Shown piece by piece: positions 57,257-63,200 of a DNA stretch of 64,000 nt. The stretch spans positions 3,286,001 to 3,350,000 of the forward strand of contig CM119382.1 in the NCBI GenBank assembly GCA_051294905.1, given 5' to 3'. The notes beneath the pieces are model-generated. The model was given only the letters and a program-made list of their open reading frames with translations. It did not search any database and was not told where the DNA came from. The first letter of the stretch is position 1; each line of letters begins with the position of its first letter. A program made the translations under genes and the position numbers. Origin of the DNA: Botryllus schlosseri (lineage: Eukaryota).

Positions 57257-60200
57257 CTGAGGAAAATATCGAATGTTTACGCGGGAAGGAACGTGATGGA
57301 AAAATGTCACTGACGGCAAATTAAGGTCAGAGATGGACAAGGGTTGTTCAAAAATTTTCCCGGATTCCAGGGATTCACTTATTACGCTGCACACCAAATT
57401 TGGCTCTATTCCAACTGGTAGATGTGAACGTACAGGATTTTGAAAATTTATTATGAGAAAATTTGTACACAAAATTTTCGAATTTCACTGTCAACCCCAT
57501 GAAATTGTTGAGTTGTCCACAAAAACGATGTTAAATAAATTCCACGCCATTCCAAGAAATCCGTAGAAGCGAAGTCATTTGAGTTTTTCATTCATGATTC
57601 TGGGGTTACCCACCGTCCAGGCTATTTATGCGACTCCACAATTTTCAACTGCATTAATTTCGCTTCTCCCGGAAGGAAGTGAGCAAAAATTGTAAGCATC
57701 GTTATTTTGGATAACTTAACAATTTAATGGGGTTGACAGTAAAATTTGAAATAACAATCATATTGTAACTTTATTATTCTTCGAAGTTACAATGAAATGT
57801 CTGTCTTGGCCGTCCTCGTCTCGAGTCACATGAATTGGTTCGAGTCACGCGCAATGACTCGAGTATAAGTCAATACACAAATTGACTGCAGTCGATTCGA
57901 GGCATTTGCAATCTTTAACAAAATCACTCTATAGTTAAGTCGAGTCAACGAAATACTGCGACTCGACTCATTACAAGCCCGGGCGTACTTGAGCACACCA
58001 AATGTGTAGAAGCACTACATCACTTACAACCTCGGACTATAATGTTATATTAGCTAAACGGCTTCCTTAATAGCGACACATAATAACATGATGAGGAAGG
58101 CAGAACATCACGGTTGAATTTAATGAAGAACCATGCAGACACTTTTCCAATGATCCTGTTTCCAGCACTCGAGGACAGATGATCATTTCACACTAGATAC
58201 ATTTCACAGACGACTGTTAAACCACGCGACACGCACGACACCTAGCAGTAACCTTGCGCGGTCATGGTGCGACGCCTGTGCGGAGCGCTAGACGACCTCC
58301 GCTCGTACTTGCAACTGCGCGGTTCAGTAGCCGTACCCCTGCCGCGTTGGGGTTGGTCGACAGAATAGAAATAGAGGAAGGAAGAGCACGAATCGTTGCG
58401 GCCGTCCCGGAGTGCGACGCCTCGCATTTTAGACAGTTCCAGCGATAGAGACCGAGAAACTTTGACGGGATATAAACAGTGAGTCATGATGTCACGATAG
58501 ATGGGCAGAACTCCAATCTGGCGTTCCATAAAGCGGCTTTATCAGCGAATAGGCTCCATAACGACCAACGAATATCATTCATTGCAACAAACGAAATCTT
58601 TCACAGAATGTATTTATGTTTTTATTAGTCTTAACCAACACTATAAGTAACTAACCTTGACTCTACGTTAGATTTCGAATCAAGTATATCAATTTCATTC
58701 GATTTCGGTAGTAAAAGAATACTTTTAGAGCATTGAGATTACTTAAACCTCCTTTCAATGCACTAAGGGAGAACGGGCTGATTAAAACTGTTAATAGTGG
58801 CCCATAGATGTGGATAAACTTGGTAGAATGATCAGACGATTAGCATTATCCCGGATAAGCAAACTTTAGGATATCAGCCCTTAGAGTTATATTATCAGCG
58901 AGAATTATTGTTTCCATATGCCGTGTACATCTGGAAACCCCGATTGGTTGTATCACGGCATCCAAAACTTATACTACAAAGCTACGCACGTTAGTGAATA
59001 ACACAATCTTGAGATTTCATGATACCTGGCGACAGAATTCGTTTTTCCCACGATAAAATAAGTTTGTAATGAAACTATTAATGACAAATGCAAGATATTA
59101 AAAGTTAAAACACAATGAACCTCACCTCTCGTCTCATAAGTATTGCTCAAAAATTCGGCGTCTTCCGGCGACGATAGCATTGTTTTAGGAGACGTGATTT
59201 CCCAAGGAGAGTATTGCTGAGTCTGAGAAAGGAAAATTAATAATCGGATGATAAGCAACCTTCTCTACCTTTAAGAAGCTCTTCAAATATATTGGGATGT
59301 AAGCGACTTACAGCCGGTGTTTCCGGTACGTCACTTTCGTTTGGTGTGAATCTGGCTGGAACGTAAGATCGCTGAAAAGTGGAGCTGCGTTCAACGTAGG
59401 ATTCTTTGGGGCTTCCGCCTTTGCAGTCAATCCGATCGAATATCTGTTTGTACTCGTTACGGACCTGGGGAATTCAAAAGCAGAATAGGTTGAAAGCTAC
59501 CTGACATATTAAATAACATTAACATTATCAGGCAAGTCTCAATACTGTGTGAACCCGTGGCGCCGTGGCTTAGTTGGCTAAAGCGCCTGTCTAGTAAACA
59601 GGAGAGAGAGAGAGAGAGAATCTTTATTCGTATACATTACATATCAACATAACACTACAAAAAATGTAACAGTGAAATGCGACATGCAAGGTAGACGGGA
59701 GGCTCGATATGACATAGTCTTCAGAGCCGAGCCACCCGGGACAGGAGCAATTTTCACAGTCGATAACTAATGAAAAAATATAAAATTAAATTAAATTAAA
59801 TTAAAATAATCCAACGAACGATAGGAAAAATAAGACACAGTATCACGGACCAATTTGTAATACAACACAAATACAATTTAGCGGTAGTTAGAGATAAGAG
59901 AATGAAAACATTGTTTTTTAAAAGCACAAGAGTCTAAATTGCGGAGATTAGGTGGCAGCTTATTCCAAACATTGACACCAATAAAACTGATTGAATTTTG
60001 TACTAGACTGGTAGAGTGGTGTTGCACAGACAGAGACAAGTTAGAAGAAAATCTATATTGTGCTATTCAGCCCGCTTGGATAGACCCATATTACACATTT
60101 GAACCTGGCGCTGTGGCGTAATTGGTTAAAGCGCCTGTCTAGTAGACTGGAGATCCTGGGTTCAAATCCCAGCGGTGCGTTTTTATCAATATTTTGTAAA

Positions 60201-63200
60201 CGATATTGTGCTATTGAGCCCACTTGGACAGACCCATGTTATCACTTTATAACTGGCGCCGTGGCTTAGTTGGTTAAAGCGCCTGTCTAGTAAACAGGAG
60301 ATCCTGGGTTCGAATCCCAGCGGTGCCTTTTTATCAATATAATTTTGTAAACAATATTGTGCTATTGAGCCCACTTGGACAGCCCCGTGTTATACTTTTA
60401 CACCTGGCGCCGTGGCTTAGTTGGATAAAGCGCCTGTCTAGTAAACAGGAGATCCTGGGTTCGAATCTCAGCGGTGCCTTTCTATCAATATACTTTTGTA
60501 ACGAATATTGTGCTATTGAGCCCACTTGGATAGACCCATATTATCTAATTGAACTGGCGCTGTGGCGTAATTGGTTAAAGCGCCTGTTTAGTAGTAGACT
60601 GGAGATCCTGGGTTCAAATCCCAGCGTTGCTTTTTTATCCATATAACTTTGTAACGAATATTGTGCTATTGAGCCCACTTGGATAGACCCATGTTATGCG
60701 TTTGTACATGGCGCCGTGGCTTAGTTGGATAAAGCGCCTGTCTAGTAAACAGGAGATCCTGGGTTCGAATCCCAGCGGTGCCTTTCTATCAATATACTTT
60801 TGTAACGAATATTGTGCTATTGATCCCACTTGGATAGACCCATAGTAACTATTTGAACCTGGCGCTGTGGCGTAATTGGTTAAAGCGCCTGTTTAGTAGA
60901 CTGGAGATCCTGGGTTCAAATCCCAGCGGTGCTTTTTTATCAATATAATTTTGTTAACGATATTGTGCCATTGAGCCCACTTGGACAGACCCATTTATAC
61001 CTGGCGCCGTGGCTTAGTTGGTTAAAGCGCCTGTCTAGTAAACAGGAGATCCTGGGTTCGAATCCCAGCGGTGCCTTTTTATCAACATAATTTTGTAAAC
61101 AATATTGTGCTATTGAGTCCGCTTGGACAGCCCCATGTTATACTTTTATACCTGGCGCCGTGGCTTAGTTGGATAAAGCACCTGTCTAGTAAACAGGAGA
61201 TCCTGGGTTCGAATCCCAGCGGTGCCTCTCTATCAATATACTTTTGTAACGAATATTGTGCCATTGAGCCCACTTGGATAGACCCATGTAGTGCATTTGA
61301 ACCTGGCGCCGTGACTTAGTTGGTTAAAGCACCTGTCTAGTAAACAGGGGATCCCGGGTTCGCATACCAGCGGTGCCTTTCTGTAACTGTAATTTTGTAA
61401 CCAATATTCTGCTATGGAGCCCACTTGGATAAACCCAGACTATAGAATTACACATGCTATGGAGCGCAATTGGACGGACCCAGATTACGTGAAGGGTTAA
61501 CTGGCACGCTGGCTTAGTTGGTCAAAGCGGCTGTTTAGTAGACAGGAAGTCCTGGGTTCGAATCTCACCGGAGCCTTTTTATCAAGATGGATTTGTAACC
61601 AATATCGTACTATGGAGCCCACTTGGAAAGACATAAATATTACACAGTTGATACAGTGACTTCATGAGAAGCCGATTAGCGATCCAAATATGTCACCCTG
61701 TCATAAATAATAAGCATAAAGTCAATTCACTCACCTGATTCGGAAAAATGCAGTACGAAACGAAAGACGCGATCCCCAGGCCGGCGTTGGAAAGACAAAA
61801 TAGAGTAGCCAGCAAAATGGTCCTTTCATTGATCCACGAGATGGCGATGATCCATGTCGTCACTTGAAGAAACAGCACGGCGAATGACTTTTTCACGCAG
61901 GTCCTGCAAGAAATGTAAGTAGTCTATTATTTACTTTCGTTATCTATAGGTTGCCATCAGGACTAGAGGTCGACCGATTATCGACCTAGACGACTATCCA
62001 CTAACCGTGTTTCCGCGATAAATTCGCTACTCGTAAATGTCAGGCTGGCGGTGCATATCCTGTATATGACAGCGCACAGGACGCCGGCTGTGGCCACAAT
62101 CGCGGCCAGAGTGGAGATGATGGGGAGCAGCATTATTCCGGATCGCGGTTCTATAAAGCAGGCCGTTGCGGTACCGTAGTCTTCATATCCAGTCCCGAGA
62201 GAGATGGCCACCACCACTGTTGGAACACCTGATGATGTATAGAGAGGTATGAAGTAGGGTTGTTGCTGTTGATATCAAGGTGTTTCATCTACTATGGTTA
62301 GTGCACTCTCAGTCACAAAAGTCTGTATTTACACCCTTGCACCACCCGTGATATGCAGGTGTGAATGTACTCCCGTGGTAGACGAAACAGGAACATGCCC
62401 CAGACTTACACCATGGTATAAATAAAAAAACAACATTTAAATCCAGATGATGCTGGCACCTAGGGACGTAGAAAACCTTCCGCTGTATGGTATGTGTATT
62501 AGGGCTGTTCAACAATTTCCCGATTATTCGATAAAATTGTTAGGTTGGCTGAAAAAACCCTGCACACCAAATTGGGTTCAACTCAACCTGTAGAAGCGAA
62601 GTTATTGGAGTCTGAAAATTTTAAATTTATTAACAAAACTTTAAAAAAAATACTGCCAACCCCATGAAATTATTTAGTTGTCTCAATAGCAAAAATTGTA
62701 CAGCTCAATTCCAGCAACCGAAGTAGCTGGTGTTCAAAATTTGCAATTGACAAAAAATACCGTAGTATTTGCGATGGGAAATTAATGATAATTAATTAAT
62801 GATTTACAGTTTGCATCATACCAGACTTGGACAACTGGAATATTTTCAGATTTTACAAATTAGATTAGAATTAGGATTATAGCTTCAAGGTTATTGCCAA
62901 ACTCGATTAAAATCAGAATTATAGGTACAGTTTTTTAAAAAAAATAGATTATAATTACAGTAAAGTTAATTCGCGGAAAATTTGGAGATTGCGTCAAGTT
63001 CTGATAATATCAAATCAAGTCTCGTCTGTGGTATTCGTGGTGTTTGTCGACTACTATGGTCAATGTCATTTTCACCAGGCCGAGATTCTTCATTTTTATT
63101 TCGTAACTGCCGACTTGTAGCGCGGCCCACTTCTGTAGGTTTTTTACAAGACACCGCTTGCGCGGATGAGTCGGCGAGGAAGAGTTTTCAAATCAAAGTT

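Follow-up and report, generated by a model that had tools for sequence, protein, structure and literature searches.

A probable young and partly decayed tRNA-Thr(AGU) gene cluster, locally amplified within an intron of a latrophilin-like receptor gene of Botryllus schlosseri

Tandem duplication of tRNA genes is known to give rise to clusters, and surveys of eukaryotic genomes have described homogeneous clusters in which the genes lie less than 1 kb apart, belong to the same isoacceptor and run in parallel, mixed with pseudogenes and subject to rapid birth and death (PMC2888827; PMC4981973). Short tRNA-bearing units of variable copy number also occur in Arabidopsis, as in the 0.4-kb repeats of tRNA-Cys (PMC10701932), and silencing is reported for some clusters (PMC7544208). 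Almost the whole tRNA gene complement of Entamoeba is organised in head-to-tail units of up to five genes with microsatellite-like spacers, and these arrays take up more than 10% of the genome (PMC2652664). [quoted passage not shown] Finally, the human tRNA VNTR at 1q23.3 is a tandem, copy-number-variable repeat with a unit of 7.3 kb that binds CTCF, and together with tDNA and TFIIIC insulators it belongs to the elements that are proposed to act as boundaries (PMC12409998; PMC4041453).

Here we describe an array in the sea squirt Botryllus schlosseri, which lies outside the surveys of PMC2888827 and PMC4981973, found within a window of 64,000 nucleotides (the whole stretch of DNA that was analysed). 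It is probable that this array is a young and partly decayed cluster of nuclear Pol III type 2 genes for a single isoacceptor, tRNA-Thr(AGU), that has been amplified locally; the formation of tRNA gene clusters by tandem duplication is of an already known kind. The units lie less than 1 kb apart, share one isoacceptor and are parallel, as in the definition of a homogeneous cluster (PMC2888827), and here too genes are mixed with pseudogenes. Unlike the surveyed clusters, the array has a tight and regular spacing of 151 bp, a three-unit higher-order repeat and an intronic position. It shares short tRNA-bearing units with the Arabidopsis clusters, which are non-intronic as well as being from a plant, and head-to-tail units with the Entamoeba arrays, whereas here there is one locus and one isoacceptor beside ordinary dispersed genes. 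Like the C. elegans genes it sits within an intron of a protein-coding gene, yet it is young, multi-copy and absent from the paralogous intron, and with the human repeat it shares the tandem clustering of tRNA genes, in units of 151 bp as against 7.3 kb.

The initial annotation had claimed an eleven-copy tRNA-Thr(AGT) array, antisense to its host gene and within one intron, and this is borne out by ten full and one partial Rfam matches (Table 1), all on the plus strand and head-to-tail. All ten full-length units reach the gathering score of the Rfam tRNA model RF00005, which is 29 bits, and the five best score between 63.9 and 71.4 bits; the truncated copy is matched in part, at 59568-59602, over model positions 10-42 (20.8 bits). 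ARAGORN called 8 of the units, every one as Thr with anticodon AGT. The internal A and B boxes were compared by eye with consensus sequences. TRF reports the core as a single array with a period of 151 (9.2 copies, 85% matches) and a period of 444 (3.1 copies), and degenerate units run on past it to ~61650. Counted from start to start, the spacings between 60107 and 61305 are 148, 151, 150, 154, 151, 142, 151 and 151 bp, in agreement with the 142-154 bp that had been proposed, and unit 10 begins 198 bp after unit 9 so that the spacings overall span 142-198 bp.

Table 1. Coordinates, within the window, of the tRNA units, the adjoining retroelement and the parts of the host gene that enclose them.
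Feature	Position	Strand	Details
Host last coding exon (begins with a 17-residue stretch)	59237..59464	-	75 aa then stop
Host intron	59465..61734	-	2,270 bp; GT-AG, phase 0; GT 61734-61733, AG 59466-59465
Truncated A-type copy	59559..59602	+	5' 44 nt, ends in anticodon stem
Young non-LTR retroelement, 5'-truncated 3' end	59603..60054	-	452 bp; host gene's orientation
Core tandem array	60055..61437	+	151-bp unit = 73-nt tRNA + ~78-nt spacer
Unit 1, type B	60107..60180	+	Rfam 44.7 bits; non-cloverleaf MFE
Unit 2, type A	60255..60328	+	Rfam 71.4 bits; cloverleaf MFE; T5 terminator
Unit 3, type A'	60406..60479	+	Rfam 63.9 bits; D-loop T20A + C62T
Unit 4, type B	60556..60632	+	Rfam 38.5 bits; 3-nt insertion in anticodon loop; missed by ARAGORN; non-cloverleaf MFE
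Unit 5, type A'	60710..60783	+	Rfam 68.8 bits; cloverleaf MFE
Unit 6, type B	60861..60934	+	Rfam 49.9 bits; non-cloverleaf MFE; 8 differences vs A
Unit 7, type A	61003..61076	+	Rfam 71.4 bits; identical to unit 2 + dispersed genes
Unit 8, type A'	61154..61227	+	Rfam 69.0 bits; T20A, G26A
Unit 9, degenerate	61305..61378	+	Rfam 40.8 bits; T arm damaged; non-cloverleaf MFE, z=-0.55
Unit 10, degenerate	61503..61576	+	Rfam 29.3 bits; non-cloverleaf MFE, z=-0.07
Host TM6/7 exon (ends with a 34-residue stretch)	61735..61896	-	Upstream border provisional

The units fall into an ordered series that reads truncated A, B, A, A', B, A', B, A, A', degenerate, degenerate, exactly as had been claimed, and the B-A-A' block of 444-449 bp is likewise recovered, with blocks of 449 bp (60107-60555) and 444 bp (60861-61304) and a B-A' block of 305 bp from which the A unit is missing. 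An ungapped lag self-similarity scan was confounded by small indels and a unit identity matrix and a tree were used instead. Identity is 97% between A units, 92-95% among A' units and 84-88% among B units, with 79-89% between types, and the tree supports a clade of A' units (94/95) and a clade of B units (95/99). From these type identities, the unit tree and the TRF period of 444 the three-unit higher-order repeat is regarded as real, in an array that holds only three such blocks, one of them incomplete. It is the kind of pattern that unequal exchange produces and this would be its likely origin. Tandem arrays are difficult to assemble, and one reading, to which we give next to no credence, would have the array as either an assembly artefact or a mobile tRNA-derived element (SINE); as regards the first of these, a pairwise divergence of 3-28% among units combined with an ordered pattern of variants is not made by collapsed or inflated assemblies.

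The types also differ in how far they resemble working genes. Minimum free energy folding gives a cloverleaf for A and A' and some other structure for B and for both degenerate copies. The two A units are identical over all 73 gene positions whilst 5 of their 78 spacer sites are different, T20A is the sole difference of unit 5 from A, and the diverged B copy in unit 1 has stem mismatches at 12-23 and 29-41 as well as G1-G72. A and B units are followed by T5-T6; A' has TTTCT or CTCT, with the next TTTT ~18 nt downstream, and the missing T4 run immediately behind A' genes, such as unit 5, counts against the view that they work. Among the eleven window copies, five (2 A and 3 A') nevertheless have the appearance of functional genes and would be expected to contribute to the Thr-AGU supply of the cell, the three B copies with their shared stem defects are probably poor or dead, and the remaining copies are two degenerate and one truncated. 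The shared substitutions of the B variant favour a non-cloverleaf fold.

With six of the eleven copies defective (three B, two degenerate and one truncated), it could be argued that the whole is a dead, satellite-like repeat made of tRNA pseudogenes, in which transcription has ceased and drift goes on via unequal exchange. The re-amplification of the defective B unit would fit such an array, as would a retroelement insertion that was tolerated without obvious cost, and in Arabidopsis the silencing of tRNA gene clusters has been reported (PMC7544208). We consider this rather unlikely, given that both A genes match canonical dispersed genes despite the differences between their spacers, and that spacers vary more than gene bodies. 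Comparing units within types, 5 of 73 columns are variable in the gene as against 14 of 60 in the 3' flank and core (p=0.011), and the inner 5' flank, the 18 nt upstream of the genes, is hypervariable with 13 of 18 columns affected (p=0.0002 vs core), all of this being drawn from 8 related units and few sites. Active tRNA genes have been associated with a conserved gene and a hyper-divergent 20-nt 5' flank (PMC6130373), and the same contrast between gene and flank would fit an array that is transcribed. Gene conversion from dispersed genes could mimic selection. The amplified units include three B copies whose defects are inherited, which indicates that amplification did not depend on each unit being functional.

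The family extends to just beyond the window, where six further diverged copies with the same spacer are found in two other introns of the host gene, and this brings the total to ~17 same-strand tRNA units over three introns. In t1, one of the outlying copies, 2 of 73 gene sites and 13 of 59 flank sites depart from A (p=6e-4), and both t1 and a second such copy, s1, are near-canonical genes inside strongly diverged flanks, which again speaks against a dead array. In a search of the genome the spacer matched at this C12 locus only, and its absence elsewhere argues for local amplification and against a SINE. Copies of the tRNA part alone are dispersed over C7, C16, C15, C2 and C4, at least 15 in number; A is identical at 73 of 73 positions to three C7 genes (for unit 2 the identity to the C7 Thr-AGT genes is 100%), and a second dispersed isodecoder carries a compensatory 7-66 pair. 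The A' and B variants are found at this locus only.

The 452 bp that separate the truncated copy from the core array belong to a very young, dispersed retroelement, which had been overlooked in the initial annotation, as had the family beyond the window. Its ends were defined by aligning 8 retroelement copies with MAFFT; the fragment has a (TC)n tail at 59603-59619 and AATAAA at 59628, and a fuller copy contains an RVT_1 ORF (E=8.4e-36). A genome search with 59620-60050 gave 531 first-look candidates, and the 40 of these that were scored have 92-100% identity over all 431 nt. A truncated tRNA copy beside a simple repeat and then a sequence of very high copy number resembles, at first sight, the head and body of a SINE, and the truncated copy was considered as such a head. 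This was rejected, as in eight further copies of the adjoining repeat the place of the tRNA piece is taken by unrelated DNA, so that the piece lies outside the element; furthermore the adjoining repeat is the 3' end of a retrotransposon that lies on the opposite strand and has no tRNA head.

The local amplification that we favour would have begun with the tandem duplication of a unit of one tRNA and a ~78-nt spacer. Next, the B-A-A' block of three units would have been re-amplified via unequal exchange, with the A unit lost from one block, and later the non-LTR retroelement would have inserted in the left end of the array and deleted part of one unit. The copies in two upstream introns of the host gene would be older and more decayed versions of the same unit.

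The host is a minus-strand gene for a latrophilin-like adhesion GPCR, the second of two paralogs. The intron that holds the array is the last coding intron and its splice sites read as had been claimed; it is flanked by the TM7 exon and the exon for helix 8 and the C-tail, and its phase-0 junction has ...YCIFPNQ joined to a 12-residue stretch. Array and retroelement together make up ~92% of it. Host exons were translated and scanned singly, each on its own, and the neighbouring exon at 63430-63699 matched Pfam 7tm_2 (E=6.7e-19). The presumed GAIN-region exons had no Pfam match; they were given to the host since they lie between the exons for OLF and 7tm_2, have matches to the paralog and, as read by eye, contain a GPS-like motif. 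The TM6/7 exon has 44% identity to paralog 1 at 9483-9665 (tblastn, E=1.7e-13) and the last coding exon has a weak match to a 14-residue stretch of paralog 1 at 8440-8481. Paralog 1 has an intron of ~1 kb at the same position (~8482-9482), where ...HCILPRK is followed by a 14-residue stretch, and no tRNA was found in this equivalent intron.

As the 3' end of paralog 2, where the array is located, faces paralog 1, units bound by TFIIIC and Pol III might be supposed to form an insulator or a Pol II roadblock that shapes expression of the host paralog or separates it from paralog 1. Elsewhere tRNA genes and TFIIIC sites can serve as barriers or insulators (PMC12409998; PMC4041453; PMC4226948), and in C. 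elegans intronic tRNA genes and their hosts affect each other (PMC4999229). It would nevertheless seem very unlikely that this is so here, as the six additional copies in two further introns of the host show that the tRNA units do not form one boundary between the paralogs, and a young, variable and part-decayed array without a counterpart in paralog 1 has the look of neutral local amplification. Equally improbable is the proposal that the units have been kept since antisense TFIIIC/Pol III complexes throttle or partition Pol II over the paralog pair, or that B, rather than being a pseudogene, is a new tRNA-derived small RNA. Whatever influence the array has on its host would in all likelihood be incidental.

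Sequencing runs X5-X20, which contain 0.10-0.16 of the query words, were considered as spliced host mRNA and rejected. The retroelement alone accounts for 452/3301 = 0.137 of the query and occurs genome-wide, so the shares in these runs would be uninformative on the host. All DNA runs that contain most of the stretch derive from a single sample, which is probably the one assembled.

Whilst its significance is modest and it has no bearing on any long-standing open question, the array is a clean and datable example of the birth and decay of a tRNA cluster, with a history in which a unit would have been seeded into several introns, amplified with a higher-order repeat, partly pseudogenised and then invaded by a retroelement. 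Since the A' and B variants are restricted to this locus, they provide natural tags for any transcription of the array.

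The tRNA-Thr(AGT) array in the host intron is best read as an ordinary, young and partly decayed tRNA-Thr(AGU) gene cluster of one isoacceptor. ARAGORN, run over the whole window, identified eight tRNA-Thr(AGT) genes, and the Rfam tRNA model gave ten full-length matches at or above the gathering score (71.4 down to 29.3 bits) together with one partial match, with no further tRNA matches in the window besides the array. Tandem Repeats Finder described a single array with periods of 151 (9.2 copies, 85% matches) and 444 (3.1 copies), and no comparable repeat array was found across the rest of the window. 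The initial annotation had described eleven copies in the order A (truncated), B, A, A', B, A', B, A, A', degenerate, degenerate, and a unit-by-unit check of the sequence returned the array, this order and the start-to-start spacings exactly.

One host exon matches a portion of the secretin-type 7TM domain (Pfam 7tm_2, E=6.7e-19) and another, ten kb beyond it and outside the window, an olfactomedin domain (E=1.3e-14); an intervening exon carries TM1 and a GPS-like motif. The exons were translated and scanned singly, and on these domains the host is a latrophilin-like adhesion GPCR. The GPS-like motif (CECRDLGRYALIL) is without the usual H-L-T/S cleavage triplet, which suggests a non-cleaving GAIN domain. 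The array intron follows an exon ending ...YCIFPNQ; the intron of paralog 1 at the matching place (after ...HCILPRK) is ~1 kb long and no tRNA was found in it. Short DNA-level similarity in several reading frames downstream of each paralog is probably shared non-coding or repeat sequence and not an exon.

Features of the array, its host gene and their surroundings (L021 is the stretch C12:3350001-3360000, directly past the right end of the window)
Feature	Position	Strand	Detail
Paralog 1	~8440-17582	-	exon order identical to host
Similarity downstream of paralogs	9231-9269; 57777-57869
Array intron splice sites	GT 61734-61733; AG 59466-59465	-	phase 0
Truncated copy	59559-59602	+	partial Rfam match 59568-59602
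Retroelement fragment	59603-60054	-	very young non-LTR family, (TC)n tail
AATAAA	59628	-	last host intron
Tandem array	60055-61437		Tandem Repeats Finder
ARAGORN tRNA genes	60107-61378	+	eight genes
Full-length Rfam match starts	60107, 60255, 60406, 60556, 60710, 60861, 61003, 61154, 61305, 61503	+
Type A	60255, 61003	+	73/73 identical to dispersed Thr-AGT genes on C7; T5 directly after
Type A'	60406, 60710, 61154	+	one D-loop change T20A; two copies add one private change each
Type B	60107, 60556, 60861	+	~8 substitutions in common
Spacer core	60207-60240		34 nt; equivalent position in every unit
7tm_2 domain (part)	63430-63699	-
GPS-like motif	L021 1604-1897	-
Outlying Thr(AGT)-like group 1	L021 1996, 2145, 2279	+	Rfam
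Outlying Thr(AGT)-like group 2	L021 4038, 4188, 4342	+	Rfam
Extent of outlying copies	L021 1996-2354 and 4038-4488 (G000:C12:3351996-3354488)	+
tRNA-Thr relics	~L021 2430-2490 and 2565-2600		by eye
Hairpin-like stretch	L021 7131-7249
Olfactomedin domain	L021 9212-9643

Each unit is made up of a 73-nt tRNA and a ~78-nt spacer. Type A' has no T4 run directly behind the gene, and the substitutions of type B include a D-stem mismatch (12-23), an anticodon-stem mismatch (29-41) and a lost G1-C72 pair, and one B copy has 3 extra nt inserted into its anticodon loop; the minimum-energy fold is a cloverleaf for A and A', and not for B or the two degenerate copies. Identity is 97% between A units (gene 100%, spacer 94%), 92-95% between A' units and 84-88% between B units (gene 92-97%), as against 79-89% between types, and a maximum-likelihood tree of the units supports an A' clade (94/95) and a B clade (95/99). 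These identities and the tree bear out the three-unit higher-order repeat proposed earlier, the blocks being B-A-A' (449 bp), B-A' (305 bp) and B-A-A' (444 bp), followed by the two degenerate units. We infer that the three-unit block was re-amplified by unequal exchange, and the middle block would have lost one unit; as the defective B unit was copied alongside good ones, function in every unit was not what drove the amplification.

The 452 bp that separate the truncated copy from the array are not array sequence. A genome search with positions 59620-60050 gave no fewer than 531 first-look matches, of which 40 were scored and proved 92-100% identical over their full length, and the fragment is 100% identical across 431 bases to copies on contigs C5 and C6, so that the insertion is very recent; the family seems to have been recently active in Botryllus schlosseri. 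A fuller copy contains a reverse-transcriptase ORF on the strand equivalent to window minus (RVT_1, E=8.4e-36); this copy is at 6812-8161 of a further stretch, L033, with the domain within 450 aa. In an alignment with eight other copies the homology begins at a (GA)n run, runs on past 60054 in the other copies, and gives way beyond the (GA)n run to unrelated DNA in every copy. Furthermore, the insertion joins tRNA position 44 to mid-spacer, hence sequence was lost upon insertion, and from both observations the truncated copy is a true array member that was cut; its reading as a tRNA-derived SINE head is rejected. The fragment places an AATAAA in host sense orientation, at which host transcripts might be polyadenylated prematurely.

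Six diverged copies, scoring 69.4 (L021 4038) down to 29.4 bits, sit on the array strand within the part of the host gene that encodes the GAIN domain and GPS motif, where they occupy two further introns. They share the array spacer, clearly in group 2 and partly in group 1, and two more relics were seen by eye. A search of the 495.5 Mb genome gave no match to the 77-nt spacer outside this C12 locus, for which reason a dispersed mobile element is rejected; the units form a local family of ~17. Taken without the spacer, the tRNA matches 15 or more dispersed copies, spread over five further contigs, and neither A' nor B variants occur among ten dispersed Thr-AGT genes (0/10). The dispersed genes (L011-L020; C7:22.68-22.71 Mb, C16:4.09-4.11 Mb, C15, C2) comprise two isodecoders, distinguished by a compensatory change at base pair 7-66 (G-C versus A-U); those on C7 form a loose cluster at intervals of 0.8-11 kb, and their GC-rich 5' flanks are related. 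The hairpin-like stretch in L021 weakly resembles the precursors of several unrelated miRNA families, with all scores below threshold (best 41 bits, cut-offs 80-171), and is probably an inverted repeat.

Within repeat types 5/73 columns vary in the gene body, 6/34 in the spacer core (ATATTGTGCTATTGAGCCCACTTGGA.AG.CCC), 8/26 in the 3' flank and 13/18 in the inner 5' flank (the last 18 nt before the following gene); in this small sample of related units the gene body varies less than 3' flank and core (p=0.011) and the inner 5' flank more than the core (p=0.0002). Mean pairwise difference among the eight good units is 0.071 for the core, 0.076 for the tRNA and 0.345 for the 18 nt before the next gene, and a comparison of A with the outlying copy at L021 4038 shows differences at 2/73 gene sites but 13/59 flank sites (p=6e-4). 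Thornlow et al. linked the combination of a conserved gene and 20 hyper-divergent nt upstream of it to transcription-associated mutagenesis where tRNA genes are active, and saw this pattern ~5x stronger there than at inactive loci (PMC6130373). This indirect evidence favours activity of some copies, with the caveat that gene conversion from dispersed genes could mimic selection.

The structural interpretation is supported by the sequence, and the array adds another case to a known kind of tandem tRNA gene cluster. It would have arisen via local duplication, a known route of tRNA gene multiplication (PMC2888827, PMC4981973); intronic tRNA genes are known on either strand (PMC4999229), and tunicate genomes can have thousands of tRNA loci, mostly pseudogenes (PMC5006418). 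Since a boundary-element role has been described for tRNA genes and TFIIIC sites in other organisms (PMC12409998, PMC4041453, PMC4226948), the suggestion in the initial annotation that the array may act as an insulator is legitimate as a hypothesis; however, the present analysis lends it no support, and with the family spread over three introns a single boundary between the paralogs would be less apt.

Most of the queried stretch is contained in four DNA sequencing runs only, all from one sample that is probably the assembled animal. Many other runs contain 10-16% of the query's words, which the retroelement fragment would explain, as it makes up 13.7% of the query and occurs throughout the genome.
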